Shown here: positions 33,625-46,200 of the stretch, in pieces
Position numbering within the stretch: position 1 is the first letter of the stretch
How the letters are laid out: each line of letters begins with the position of its first letter
Assembly (NCBI GenBank): GCA_964035545.1
Contig: OZ037770.1
Span: 620,001-684,000, forward strand
Origin: Bugula neritina
Lineage: Eukaryota; Animalia; Bryozoa
Length of the DNA stretch: 64,000 nucleotides
Reading direction: 5' to 3'
Notes under the pieces: model-generated
Seen by the model: only the letters and a program-made list of their open reading frames with translations
What the model was told of the DNA's origin: nothing
The model's database searches: none
Translations under genes and position numbers: made by a program

Positions 33625-36600
33625 ATGTTTTTGAATATAATAATATTGCTCTGGGTAAATCAGTTGCTACTTTGTCAAGCTGCACAATTGTAAGTGACAC
33701 ATTACACTAGTAATTATTAAGATACCCATACATTGCCAATTTTCGATTTTGAAACTTAGTTTACTGTATTTTAAATACAGGCATCTGGCTCAGTTATTTT
33801 TGCATACAATTGACTATAGTAATTAAAGTCACTACTACTACTGCATATGCTTTTGCTTTAAGTTATTAAAGAAACACTCTGCACACAATATTTATTTTCT
33901 TGTAGTGCTGTCCTGAGGGATCTACGAATGTTTCAGCTGCGTCGACAAACATTTACCATAAGGACTGATATACGCGTTGAAGTAAAAGAAGTAACTTTTC
34001 AAAGTTATGCTTTTGGCTATCAGTTTTGTCTTATAGGAAAATACGTTGAATGCACCAGTACAGTATTTGCTACTTTCATCAACTACAATGAGGAAAAATT
34101 ACTTAAAGTAAGTATTATACCAACTCCATCATGTGTGTCACATTTTTTTCAAGAATACGTTACTGCAGAGAGTAATCATCTGCGTATATGTATATATGTA
34201 TGTGTATATGTATGTATGTATGTGTCTTTGTATATATGTATGTGTCTTTGTATATATGTATGTGTATATGTATATATGTATGTGTATATGTATGTATGTA
34301 TGTATGTGTTGTGTATCCAGAAAAAAACAAGTATTAAACTATCAGTATACTCTCTCTCTCTCTCTCTCTCTCTCTCTCTCTCTCTCTCTCTCTCTCTCTC
34401 TCTCTCTCTCTCTCTCTCTCTCTCTCTCTCTCTCTCTCTCTCTCTCTCTCTCTCTCTCTCTCTCTCTCTCTCTCTCTCTCTCTCTCTCTCTCTCTCTCTA
34501 TATATATATATATATTATATACATATATACACACATATATATATATATATATATATATATATATATATATATATGTATATATATATATAAATATATATAT
34601 ATATATATATATATATATATATATATATATATATATATATATATATATATAAATAATTATTTCTATTTCTTTCTTGTTCTCAGGCAGACTTTCCAGACTT
34701 AGAACCAGGTGTCAGATACAGTATTCAATTTAAAGGTTTTCGTGACACCAGAGCAAATATAGTAGTTGATCAGACAGTTGCCCTCAATATTGGTATTTGG
34801 TTTATTTATTTATTTATAATTAATTCATTTGCGTGGACCAATTTCATGAATATATGGTAAAGATATTTTATTACAGTCAGTTTTAAAAACATTTTGAAGC
34901 TCTTCATGGTTCAGAGTCTTTTTTTAAAATTGTAACCCAAGTGGCTATATTTTTTAATATTTTTGTGATCAAAGGCATTATGTTAGACACATCCTGAAGT
35001 TACACTTTTAGCTCCAATGAGAGTTGAGAAATTTCAAGTAGAGAATGGATATAGTGAAGACATAATCATAACAGTCAAACTTACAGCGAAGACCCCTTCT
35101 GGAAAAACTTCATATTACAATGGACTAGTACTAAAGTACAATTCATCAACAAATGAAAATGAACAGAGAATTTCAGGTAATATTATTTTAATTTTGCTTT
35201 TGAAAAAGTTGTGGATAACAGTCTTGCGGTGATAAACTGCTGAGATATTTCAGAGTCTACTAATTTTCATTTTCTAGCTTTATTTTGCTTCTGCTTTGGT
35301 AAGAATTGCAACTTTTCTTGAGCTCAAATATTGGCAACCTTCCAATTACAGTGATTATAATGTGTTTTCTAAATATTAAATGCATACAAGCCTTTCACGG
35401 ATAGAAAGATAAATTTTCACTTATACCTCTGCTGAAAAAAAGTACCCAGTTTCAGATAAAAGCATAAAAGCATTTGATGAAATCATATTGAAGCCGAGGC
35501 TTACTTTCTAATAGTGAGATCTGACACGCTACAATTGATGCCTTTTGTGAACTTCATGAATTAGTGCAGTTGATCAGCATAAAAGCAATAATTGAGAAAG
35601 TGTAGGCAATGTAATTATTAACATATGAGTACGTCATTTAATCACCAAAGTGATAACTAAATAATTATATCTACAAGAAGTTACTATTCTTTCGTACTAT
35701 CACTCTAAAATCGGCCAATTAAGTTATCTCAGTACAAAAACTTTTATGAGTGGATTTTACAATACAACTTGCAAAAAATTCAACTCAGCAAAATTGAATT
35801 TCTGACTGAAAGTTGTGAAGGTATAAGCGCAACTTTACTCTCAACGTGTTTGAGTATTAAAACTCTACCTCCCCCCCCCCTTCCTTTCTTCTACTCAAAG
35901 ATGTAACTTTTAAGTGCATGATTCTAACAAAATGATTTGCTTCAGCTAAATTTATTTGCTCAAGTGATTGCAGTTCGAGGCACCTTTTTATTTTACGTTC
36001 TTAACAGTTGAACCTGGAGCTAAAAGCTGGAGTAGGACTCAGCTCAATCTTCCTGGAAACAGAGAGGTCAATTTTATGTTGTACAGTTCTTCTGTGGCAG
36101 ACTTTGCCAAACAGCTTTATGTAGTTTCTGATCTAGTAACCTTACACACAGGTAAACTTAGTTTTTGTTTTTCTCAGCTAATCATGGATAAACTATAAAG
36201 ATAAATTATAAGATCCCAAAAAATCAATACCGCACATTGTCATAGTTATAAGCCCAATCAAACCTACAGAGTTTTTTTTCTGTAATTTTTTTTCCAAACA
36301 GGTAATTTCAGTTTCTGTTTTATCATTGCATAAACATATTTACATATTTTACCAGAATTCTGCATTGTTGCTGCCCAGCAATAGTCAAAGTTATCATGAA
36401 TCTGTTAATAGGTCACCAAATAATTAAATAGCAAATAATAAAAACAGGAAGTTCCTAATAGCTCACTGACCCTAGTTTGGCTATAAAATACACAAATAAT
36501 CAGTTTACTTTCTCTTTTGTTAGGACCTGACTTTCCTCCTGACATATCAGTCACTCTTGTGGACAGAACTATAATTGTCTCCTGGACTCCAAGTGATGAG

Positions 36601-43267: not shown

Positions 43268-46200
43268 ATGATTTTGAAACTAATAATATTACTCTGGGTA
43301 AATCATTTGCTACTTTGTCAAGCTTCACAGCTGTTGTAAGTGATCCATACGCTAAAAATACTAAGCTGTACACATATTCATTTGCAATAATTACAATAAC
43401 TTACTGTAATTCAAGATAAAAGCATTTGGCTCAGACTTCTTTGCATACAACACACCCTTATTAGAAGTTCCCCAGTGATCCCTTTTATTTAAGAGTTGTG
43501 TCCTCCCAAAGTGAATAGGTTAGACCTTTGTGTAAAGAGCAAACTCATTAAATAATATTTAAATTTTGCCTGCTACTTTAAATTCTAATTATGCCATGAA
43601 ATTGTTCTTTAGGAGCTAAATATTTAGGTACAAACACACATATTAGCAGTTCAAGAAAAGTTTTATGAATATTTCTTTAAGAAATGAAGTTGAAATCATT
43701 TTGTGGTTTAGGTTATTGAGCAATGCTGAAATGGCACTTCAGCGTTGATCAGCAACTAAAAACCACAAAAAAGGTTTTTTATTTTAGAAAAATCAACTCT
43801 TCATTGTAAGGGGGTCATTTAGGATCTATGAAAGGGGTGCATTAACTATAGAATTTCAAAGTTATTTTTGATCTAAAACTTCTACTACTATGTCTATTTT
43901 TGCTTTAAGTTAATAAAAAAATATATATCAAACTTAATATCTATTCTCCTTTAGAACTGTTTTGAGGAATCTACGAGTGTTTCAGCTGAAATTGGAAACA
44001 TTTACTATAAGGGCTGACATACGAGTCAAAGTAACTGAAACAACTTTTGATAGTTGGACTTTGGGCTATCAGTTTTGTCTTGCAGGAAGAAGTTACGTTA
44101 TGTGCAGCGATCAAGATTTTGCTCTTTTCATTCATTACAATCAAGTAGAACTACTTCAAGTAAGTGTTATCAACTTCATGATGATGTGTGTCATGTTTTT
44201 AAAAAAATACATTACTATATGGAGAGTATACAATGGTTAAAAAGAAAGAGAGAGAGAGAGAGAGAGAGAGAGGGAGAGAGAGAGAGAGAGAGAGAGAGAG
44301 AGAGAGAGAGAGAGAGAGAGGGAGGGAGAGAGAGAGAGAGAGAGAGAGAGAGAGAGAGAGAGAGAGAGAGAGAGAGAGAGAGAGAGGGAGAGAGAGAGAG
44401 GGAGAGAGAGAGAGAGAGAGAGAGAGAGAGAGAGAGAGAGAGAGAGAGAGGGAGAGAGAGAGAGAGAGAGGGAGAGAGAGAGAGAGAGAGAGAGAGGAGA
44501 GAGAGAGAGAGAGAGAGGAGAGAGAGAGAGAGAGAGAGAGAGAGAGAGAGAGAGAGAGAGAGAGAGAGAGAGAGAGAGAGAGAGAGAGAGGAGAGAGAGA
44601 GAGAGAGAGAGAGAGAGAGAGAGAGAGAGAGAGAGAGAGAGAGAGAGAGAGAGAGAGAGAGAGAGAGAGAGAGAGAGATAGAGAGATAGAGATAGAGAAA
44701 AAAAAGGTGGAGAAAAGATAATGGCATAAAGATAAATTATTTCTTGTTTTTAGGCAGACTTCCCAGACCTGGAACCAGGTGTCAGATACACAGTTCACTT
44801 CATAGGGTTTCGTCAATACAGAGAACGTAAAAGGATTGATCAAACAGTATACCTCAATATTGGTATTTGTTTAACTACTTATATCAGCAAATCTGATCGA
44901 GAAACAACTTGCAATAACTTTAACTTTGATTATTTGCATGTGCAGGTTTCATGAACATGTGTTGTAGGTTTTTATTGTTGTTGATTTTAAAAACATTTAA
45001 AAGCTCTCAATACAGTTCAAGATTTGCTTTATAACCCTCATAACTTTAATTTCAGTGACTATAAATTTTAATATTTTTTGTGATCAAATACTTTCTCTTA
45101 GACACATCTTGAGTTTATACTTTTAGCTCCAATGAAAGTTGAGAAATTTCAAGTAAAGAATGAATATAGTAAAAATATAATCATAACTGTCAACCTTACA
45201 ACAAAGACACCTTCGGGAAAATCTTCCCATTACAATGGACTAGTACTAAAGTATAATTCATCAAAAAGTGGAATTGAACAGACAATTTCAGGTAACTCTA
45301 TTTTAATTTTGCTTATGAAAAGGTGGTGGATAATAGTCTTGAGGTGATGTACTGCATGCAAAACTATTTTAGAGTCTACTAATTTTCATTTTGTAGCTTT
45401 GTTTTGCTTTTGCTTTTAAAGAAATGAAATTTTCTCTGAACTAATATAATGGCAACTTTCTATTTATAATTTGTGTTTTCCAAAAGCATTTTTTAGGTAG
45501 AAAGATAAATCTCAATTGCTCTCGATAACTGTCTATTAAACTTTTCTCTCTCTCTGGTTTACTTAGTTATGTTGTTTCTGAACAACTCTAACAAAATGAC
45601 ATAGTTCAAAAGTTTATCACAATTGTTTGTTTTTGGTTAAATATTGAAAAGAAAATTGTACTTATAGTAAAAAAATCTAACTAAGATATGGCTCATTTTG
45701 TCATGTGATAATCCTATTTTTTGCTTTTAAAGTTTTAACAACTCTGCCGATCTTTACTTTTACTAGTGATTGAACTCAGGGTTACTGATTGAGTTATGCC
45801 AGCAATCCTGCTCTCCTTTAACTGCAACTGAACTGAGCTGTTCAGAGGATTACAGTTCAAGGCACCTTTCTATTTCATGTTTTTAACAGTTGAACCTGGA
45901 TCTAAAAGCTGGAGTAGATCTGAGCTCAATGTTCTTGGAAACAGAGAGGTCAATTTAATGTTGTATAGTTCTTCAGTGGGAGACTTTGCCAAACAGCTTT
46001 ATGAGGTTTCTGACTTTATAACCCTACACACAGGTAAACTTATGTTCAGTTGTTTCATTGCATAAACAGATGTACAATTTTTACCAACATTTTGCAATAT
46101 TATAGCTGCCCAGCAATAGTCAAAGTTATTATGAATCTGTAAATAAGTCGCCAAATAATTAAATAGCAAATAATACAAACATGAAGTTCCTAATAGATCA

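Follow-up and report, generated by a model that had tools for sequence, protein, structure and literature searches.

What makes the outermost domain of a tandem family of membrane proteins differ so strongly from copy to copy, when the rest of the protein does not? This question is raised by a 64,000-nt stretch of the genome of the bryozoan Bugula neritina (GenBank assembly GCA_964035545.1, contig OZ037770.1, positions 620,001 to 684,000 of the forward strand; hereafter the window, with positions counted from its first base). The window is AT-rich (~31% G+C) and carries a plus-strand tandem array of seven related genes, c1 to c7, in units of roughly 10 kb each. An earlier note on this DNA had described domain 1 of the encoded proteins as hypervariable above conserved inner domains, and had read this as the mark of a specificity-determining surface under diversifying selection. 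The pattern is real, its limits are clear, and the receptor family in which it occurs is a new one in bryozoans. Between paralogs, most of it is what would be expected from surface residues drifting neutrally around a conserved core, and diversifying selection on domain 1 is plausible, supported by one recent pair.

Profile searches of the window's own genome revealed at least 18 family genes on one contig (C6: 495-705 kb, ~210 kb) and no family matches elsewhere in the genome. The genes were placed by exon-by-exon hidden Markov model (HMM) searches together with splice-site placement, including the fetched flanks of the window, and comprise ten minus-strand genes (M1 to M10), the seven plus-strand genes of the window, and one further minus-strand gene (M11). 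The sequence identities in the sister pair c4/c5 confirmed the hypervariability. The span previously pointed out, 33906 to 44862, proved exact, running from the first base of c4 exon 2 to the last base of c5 exon 3 with AG/GT boundaries, and the earlier counts of identical residues (40/69 in exon 2, 24/36 in exon 3, and 80/86 in exons 6 and 7) were reproduced as 40 of 67 aligned codons (60%), 24/36 (67%), and 79/85 (93%). Over the whole of domain 1, 64 of 103 residues were identical between c4 and c5, compared to 392 of 462 in exons 4-12 (Fisher P = 7.5e-7). Across the family (17-18 genes), mean pairwise amino acid identity was 0.23 in exon 2, 0.37 in exon 3, and 0.43-0.56 in exons 4-12. The hypervariability is real and is concentrated in exon 2, as a step and not a smooth gradient. 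The accompanying statement that the inner domains are conserved held for c4/c5 but not for the family as a whole, where these domains are 43-56% identical. Similarly, the domain 1 scaffold W.M.F.FCL.G..Y..C, said to persist in all seven copies, was confined to the plus-strand subfamily, although c4 has Y in place of W and c6 lacks both cysteines, and the minus-strand genes do not have the cysteine motif. Family-wide, only one position of exon 2 is invariant. Even at ~20% identity, exon 2 still keeps its reading frame, its length (202-217 nt), and its core residues, and domain 1 is, therefore, retained as a folded unit.

All genes follow one plan: a signal-peptide-like exon 1, five domains of ~100 residues, a module encoded by exon 12, a transmembrane exon, and a short cytoplasmic exon. 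In all 18 genes, each domain is split over two exons (2+3, 4+5, 6+7, 8+9, and 10+11), and exon 12 encodes a membrane-proximal module of ~70 residues with two cysteines. Since domain 1 is N-terminal in a type I membrane protein, the term membrane-distal is correct. The exon boundaries of c4 were obtained from the paralog alignment, with canonical AG/GT sites and the reading phase kept in every copy; canonical splice sites and consistent phases are common to the 18 paralogs. The features of c4 and of the 5' part of c5 are as follows.

33625-33689, plus strand: c4 exon 1, with ATG and a hydrophobic signal-peptide-like leader, a 2-nt split codon, and a GTAAGT donor; it has a counterpart in c5
33906-34107, plus strand: c4 exon 2, encoding the initial two thirds of domain 1, its hypervariable part, with conserved AG/GT and phase; 60% amino acid identity to c5
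34184-34655, plus strand: microsatellites in the c4 domain 1 intron, (GTATATGT..)n, (CT)75, and (TA)79
34684-34792, plus strand: c4 exon 3, encoding the final third of domain 1, with the L.PG.RY motif followed by a variable stretch
35012-36151, plus strand: c4 domain 2 (exon 4, 35012-35176; exon 5, 36008-36151)
36524-38202, plus strand: c4 domain 3 (exon 6, 36524-36663; exon 7, 38085-38202), 93% identical to c5
38508-39382, plus strand: c4 domain 4 (exon 8, 38508-38665; exon 9, 39235-39382)
39747-40495, plus strand: c4 domain 5 (exon 10, 39747-39917; exon 11, 40343-40495)
41603-41812, plus strand: c4 exon 12, the two-cysteine module, its start set at the second AG acceptor by the frame
42102-42177, plus strand: c4 transmembrane exon
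42696-42795, plus strand: putative short cytoplasmic exon of c4, its frame conserved with c5 and its splice site deduced from the translation
43268-43335, plus strand: c5 exon 1, signal-peptide-like leader
43955-44159, plus strand: c5 exon 2 (domain 1)
44243-44698, plus strand: (AG)230 microsatellite within the intron of c5 domain 1
44754-44862, plus strand: c5 exon 3 (domain 1)

Two AG acceptors lie 7 nt apart in front of exon 12 (41596-41603); with exon 11 ending in phase 1, the frame is kept by the downstream AG alone, which is present in c2-c5 and absent from c1 and c6. The short tails of c4 (42696-42795) and c5 (51700-51800) have IKS(K/R)EWED.LES in common and are divergent beyond it. The end of the c5 tail, VPYYLL, fits the pattern (S/I/V/L)xYxx(I/V/L) of an immunoreceptor tyrosine-based inhibitory motif, while the c4 tail has no such motif.

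Given the contrast between domain 1 and the rest of the gene, we compared substitution rates between c4 and c5, with in-frame exon codons pooled and split codons dropped, as for the trees. By maximum likelihood, domain 1 had a synonymous divergence (dS) of 0.434 and a non-synonymous divergence (dN) of 0.294, giving a ratio (omega) of 0.68, not different from 1 (likelihood ratio test [LRT] statistic 1.5). For exons 4-12, dS was 0.235, dN 0.075, and omega 0.32 (LRT against 1 = 34), and Nei-Gojobori estimates agreed with maximum likelihood. The non-coding divergence (K) of the pair was ~0.28 along the unit, with 0.276 in the sequence upstream of exon 2, 0.287 in the intron between exons 3 and 4, and 0.23-0.37 in other parts, apart from a lower patch over the exon 4-6 introns. 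Total divergence reached this non-coding level in exon 2 (0.323) and exon 3 (0.287) and was 0.05-0.15 in the inner exons. Because a K of ~0.28 also flanks domain 1, the contrast within c4/c5 comes from differing constraint and not from conversion among the inner exons, and domain 1, taken as one unit, evolves at the neutral rate (dN 0.29 versus K 0.28). An older origin of the domain 1 segment in this pair was ruled out, the flanking non-coding K being the same as elsewhere in the unit.

Codon models gave a similar picture for the wider family. Using our own implementation of GY94 with F3x4 codon frequencies and IQ-TREE trees, the nearly neutral model M1a assigned 36% of the domain 1 codons of the six intact plus-strand genes to omega 0.18 and 64% to omega 1. 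The neutral fraction was 64-72% in domain 1 compared to 16-40% in the other domains, and omega was 0.56-0.68 in domain 1 compared to 0.32-0.35 in domains 2-5, which were also without a positive class.

A signal above neutrality was found in one pair of minus-strand genes. M7 and M8 have a recently shared block of ~3 kb that starts 1 kb upstream of exon 2 and ends in the intron between exons 4 and 5; within it, they differ at 11 of 202 positions of exon 2 (5.4%), 37 of 2264 non-coding positions (1.6%), and 2 of 277 positions of exons 3 and 4. Exon 2 thus shows 3.3 times the substitution density of its flanks (Fisher P = 0.0013), and nine of its 11 changes are non-synonymous, compared to 2.6 expected from the flanks (Poisson P = 0.0014). 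The changes are all single-base substitutions, scattered over 11 separate codons between codons 8 and 67. The transfer of a patch by conversion from some distant paralog was considered and ruled out, as it would have brought far more than 11 isolated changes. The excess in M7/M8 exon 2 is suggestive of a process beyond neutral drift and favors selection for change. In c4/c5, dN at independently defined variable sites was 0.39, compared to a flank K of 0.28 (one-sided p ~0.06, by our own arithmetic).

Several results weigh against diversifying selection as the general explanation. No class of codons with omega above 1 was needed for domain 1, either with six genes (M2a against M1a, LRT 1.67, p 0.43) or with the 17 readable genes (M2a against M1a, LRT 2.67, p 0.26; M8 against M7, LRT 1.19, p 0.55), in site models whose power is limited by recombination and by synonymous saturation (tree length of 6-28 substitutions per codon). 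In four paralog pairs, the omega of domain 1 ranged from 0.59 to 1.3 and was never significantly above 1, and at variable sites defined from other paralogs it was 0.72-0.85 in three pairs with dS as the yardstick. Domain 1 dS is itself up about 2-fold in two sister pairs, c4/c5 and M2/M3. The earlier note had singled out a dS in exons 2-3 as raised as dN as the sign of an older divergence without selection; dS there is indeed raised as well, 1.85-fold for c4/c5 and 2.8-fold for M2/M3, against 3.9- and 3.3-fold for dN. In addition, the M7/M8 signal comes from a single pair picked out post hoc among four, M8 carries a 21-kb insertion and may be decaying, and at least three of the 18 genes are broken. 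Of the proposed diversifying selection, the acceleration of domain 1 stood, with an omega twice that of the rest of the gene in c4/c5; an omega above 1 was found neither by the site models nor in the pairwise comparisons, and a nearly neutral model is sufficient for the codon data as they stand.

Exchange of exon blocks between paralogs is common in this family. The nearest neighbor of a given gene shifts from exon to exon, and the trees of exon blocks conflict with bootstrap support of 86-100%. M8, for example, groups with M7 in exons 2-5, with M9 and M10 in exons 7-8, and with c6 in exons 9-12, while c6 belongs with the plus-strand group in domain 1 and its 5' exons and with the minus-strand genes M8-M10, 60-90 kb away, in exons 5-12. 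The 3' half of exon 11 (40400-40495 in c4) is nearly identical in c4, c7, M2, M3, M5, M6, M7, and M10, which are otherwise distant genes, and its last 30 nt recur with 100% identity in an independent contig from the Logan assemblies (L022); this near-identity may point to repeated conversion or to constraint at the nucleotide level. The c4/c5 comparison shows a patch of low K (0.155-0.173, about half the ~0.28 of the rest) over the exon 4-6 introns (35177-36523), likely a local conversion tract. The introns beside domain 1 in M2/M3 are 0.46-0.55 diverged, about twice the rest (0.12-0.29), and omega is nearly equal in domain 1 (0.59) and the remainder (0.50); M2/M3 is better explained by a domain 1 segment of greater age. 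Domain 1 also takes part in recent block transfers, since the 5' end is the most similar part of the genes in M7/M8 and c6/c7. Homogenization of the inner exons by conversion, raised in the earlier note as an alternative, fits the family in that exchange is common but does not explain c4/c5, with its uniform K of ~0.28.

The intron that divides domain 1 between exons 2 and 3 has a peculiarity of its own. In 15 of the 18 genes, including minus-strand genes outside the window, it contains a microsatellite of 100-600 bp. The usual repeat, read on the sense strand, is (GA)n, and three genes have (TA)n. Summed over the measured genes, microsatellites make up 51% of this intron, compared to 0-19% of the other introns and 4.8% of the region. 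The position of the repeat is constant across subfamilies even though the adjoining exon 2 is only ~20% identical. Splicing, recombination, and a barrier function are conceivable roles for the repeat, which may equally have none. In M6, the domain 1 intron is 99 nt long, and reading through it meets a stop. The domain 1 regions of the other copies in the window are as follows.

964-1666, plus strand: c1 domain 1 (exon 2, 964-1168; (AG)n, 1262-1518; exon 3, 1564-1666)
12109-13000, plus strand: c2 domain 1 (exon 2, 12109-12310; (TA)n, 12390-12658; exon 3, 12892-13000)
22093-23161, plus strand: c3 domain 1 (exon 2, 22093-22297, with a frameshift pair and a stop; (GA)n, 22342-22935; exon 3, 23047-23161)
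54003-54584, plus strand: c6 domain 1 (exon 2, 54003-54207; exon 3, 54476-54584), both cysteines lost and the gene rearranged downstream
62574-63282, plus strand: c7 domain 1 (exon 2, 62574-62778; (AG)n, 62898-63061; exon 3, 63174-63282)

Of the seven copies across which the scaffold had been said to persist, c3 is not intact. Its exon 2 (22093-22297) contains a compensating +1/-1 frameshift pair, ~25 nt apart, with a stop in the shifted stretch, so that the FCL.G motif is in a frame different from that of its flanks, and its exon 10 (28166-28312) has a 24-nt in-frame deletion; c3 is probably a pseudogene. The Darwin Tree of Life assembly of Bugula neritina was built from PacBio HiFi reads and has a consensus quality value (QV) of 53.7 (PMC11480708), and because this quality is high, the frameshifts in these genes are likely real. 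The gene c6 has a stop codon in exon 6 (55475-55617) and copies of exons 7 and 8 inverted onto the minus strand by a local inversion (55991-56456), and in M3 exon 6 is split across two frames. Several further genes lacked one exon in this search. In M8, which lies outside the window (C6, ~568-590 kb), ~21 kb are inserted between exons 9 and 10, and 5.7 kb separate exons 11 and 12.

Family members were also seen in public samples. The Logan contigs L022 and L023 (SRR4020082/3) and the JGI/IMG sequences P0003 and P0005 are far from identical to their best counterparts here: L022 is 79% identical to M2 over 989 bp, intron included, and exon 12 fragments from public samples are, by eye, roughly 80-85% identical to c1 and M6. 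In this uncalibrated comparison, these contigs could be orthologs from cryptic species or haplotype-specific genes.

How, then, could the variation of domain 1 have arisen, and what might it do? In the mechanism we propose, the seven genes of the window belong to a cluster, apparently specific to bryozoans, of 18 or more genes for type I membrane proteins with five predicted beta-sandwich domains, and the family evolves as copies are duplicated in tandem, are lost, and swap exon blocks with one another. Domain 1 would keep only its hydrophobic core, ~25-35% of its codons, and its remaining positions would be free of purifying selection. Shortly after duplication at least, these free positions would be pushed to change, mainly in exon 2, and each paralog would thereby present a different outer surface on a conserved stalk. 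As the most likely role, we regard it as quite possible, if somewhat short of probable, that this variation sets the partner or ligand specificity of a repertoire of recognition or adhesion receptors. Gene structure, topology, rate contrasts, and mosaicism are demonstrated here, whereas binding by domain 1 and the adaptive nature of its diversity are inferred. Alternatively, domain 1 could be a folded cap or spacer whose non-core positions drift at the mutation rate and carry no specificity code. Relaxed constraint of this kind agrees with M1a fitting as well as M2a and M7 as well as M8, with a domain 1 omega that is not different from 1 in any pair, with exons 2 and 3 of c4/c5 having diverged as far as the flanking non-coding DNA, and with the several pseudogenes in the family. 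Drift, however, cannot exceed the neutral rate, and M7/M8 exon 2, with nine of 11 changes non-synonymous, lies well above its flanks. Furthermore, about one third of the domain 1 codons are at omega ~0.2, so a neutral rate over the whole domain implies that the free sites are somewhat above it. Relaxed constraint alone is a distinct possibility, though on the doubtful side.

It could also be argued that conversion or exon-block exchange homogenizes the inner exons while domain 1 escapes and displays an older divergence. The switching of M8 and c6 between groups in strongly supported trees, the near-equal omega and doubly diverged domain 1 introns of M2/M3, and the low-divergence patch over the exon 4-6 introns of c4/c5 are all in keeping with such a process, but the non-coding divergence of c4/c5 stays at ~0.28, also on both flanks of domain 1, the inner exons of this pair being alike through purifying selection (omega 0.32), and domain 1 itself participates in the recent transfers in M7/M8 and c6/c7. 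As the explanation for the domain 1 contrast, homogenization is decidedly unlikely. A mutational origin, in which the (GA)n or (TA)n repeat raises mutation in the adjoining exons and inflates both dS and dN, would account for the enrichment of repeats in the exon 2-3 intron and for the roughly doubled domain 1 dS in two pairs. Yet in M7/M8 the intron sequence touching the repeat is only 2.5% diverged, its substitution density not being raised by the repeat; exon 3, just downstream of the repeat, has 1 change in 109 positions compared to 11 in 202 spread over the whole length of exon 2; and the excess is mostly non-synonymous. We consider local hypermutability very improbable.

The identity of the proteins was approached through motifs, structure models, and database searches. 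The second exon of every domain contains an '(L/I)P.G..(Y/F).(I/V).(F/V)' motif resembling that of fibronectin type III (FN3) domains, and domain 3 has 'VSW.P'; the assignment to an FN3-like fold, which rests on these motifs, is putative. Searched against Pfam, ten single c4 exons, each half to two thirds of a domain, gave chance-level matches only, and none for exons 2 and 3. AlphaFold modeled c4 exon 2 alone as all-beta (pLDDT [predicted local distance difference test] 74.6) and exon 12 alone as beta-rich (pLDDT 75.8). In Foldseek searches, the exon 2-only model had no significant match in the PDB and no V-set match (none at E<=0.001), and the exon 12-only model had none at E<=0.001 and weak matches to FN3 and bacterial immunoglobulin (Ig)-like domains. 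A profile HMM of exon 12 found no full-length relative among 1.84 billion representative proteins; its matches were short open reading frame fragments from Logan and JGI assemblies and bacterial Ig-like repeat proteins with a common beta-strand motif. A homologous-protein search with c4 exon 2 yielded no candidate, an ESM Atlas search with c5 exon 2 no usable match, and two metagenome scans using patterns from exons 2 and 3 of domain 1 turned up no relatives. As far as the searched libraries show, the family appears to be lineage-specific.

With regard to known systems, the family is most readily compared to the Alr genes of Hydractinia, of which Alr1, Alr2, and ~39 further loci lie in the allorecognition complex (PMC9546547, PMC8282982). 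Both are clustered families whose proteins cross the membrane once and have beta-sandwich ectodomains in tandem, with numerous pseudogenes and very low identity between paralogs, in both the variable domain is the membrane-distal one, and both hosts are colonial marine animals. The type I single-pass topology and the genomic cluster with pseudogenes that mark Alr genes are found here as well. Unlike in Alr, whose domains are V-set or I-set Ig domains of one exon each (PMC9546547), each of the five Bugula domains is spread over two exons and carries FN3-like motifs, and the two families have no detectable homology. Domain 1 gave no V-set match in Pfam, with exons 2 and 3 as single queries, or in the PDB, with the exon 2-only model, and its L.PG.RY motif is FN3-like. 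The Bugula tails are short, with no immunoreceptor tyrosine-based activation motif in c4 or c5, unlike in Alr. Extreme allelic polymorphism is the true hallmark of Alr-type genes; Alr specificity lies in such polymorphism and in homophilic binding, whereas the Bugula cluster is known here from the paralog sequences of one haplotype. Judged from sequence, the resemblance to Alr appears to be one of organization and evolutionary style, and not of descent or domain type.

Other clusters share some of these traits. The aggregation-factor cluster of the sponge Amphimedon (PMC5400394) and fuhc/fester of Botryllus (PMC3549757) are likewise lineage-specific, clustered, and fast-evolving candidates for self/non-self recognition, and they exemplify the lack of homology between the allorecognition genes of different metazoan phyla; they differ in having other domain types (Calx-beta/Wreath or other) and in being backed by genetic or polymorphism data. 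The intronic repeat recalls the DRB genes of major histocompatibility complex class II (PMC2827794, PMC4629986), where the most variable exon likewise has a long simple repeat immediately next to it, kept at one place in the intron. Like the Bugula repeat, the DRB short tandem repeat (compound, in intron 2) occurs in nearly all members of a recombining family that changes in copy number. Protein and taxon are unrelated, however, and the Bugula repeat, mostly (GA)n, sits within the variable domain itself, separating that domain's two exons. Finally, the domains of ~100 residues, the 'VSW.P' and '(L/I)P.G..Y.(I/V).(F/V)' motifs, the phase 1 introns between domains, and the weak structural matches of the exon 12 model are reminiscent of FN3 and cytokine-receptor-like ectodomains, although no single exon, each covering half to two thirds of a domain, matches the Pfam FN3 family (PF00041).

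A more specific version of the recognition reading would make the cluster a bryozoan self- or kin-recognition complex, with exon 2 as a specificity determinant shaped by positive selection and segment exchange, and with the (GA)n repeat as part of the machinery of diversification or exchange, comparable to DRB. We hold this to be unlikely, though worth keeping in view. Colonial animals are expected to carry polymorphic recognition genes; to our knowledge, the recognition systems found so far in Hydractinia, Botryllus, and sponges use unrelated proteins, and we know of none in Bryozoa. Larvae of one member of the Bugula neritina species complex, though not of others, are reported to show kin-biased settlement (Keough 1984, cited in PMC10078279). 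For receptor families in general, a variable outer domain on a conserved stalk, when seen between paralogs, is no proof of diversifying selection; in this cluster, neutral drift of surface positions explains most of it. For Bugula neritina, the cluster provides a concrete and testable recognition candidate, with defined exons to type and a domain to swap.

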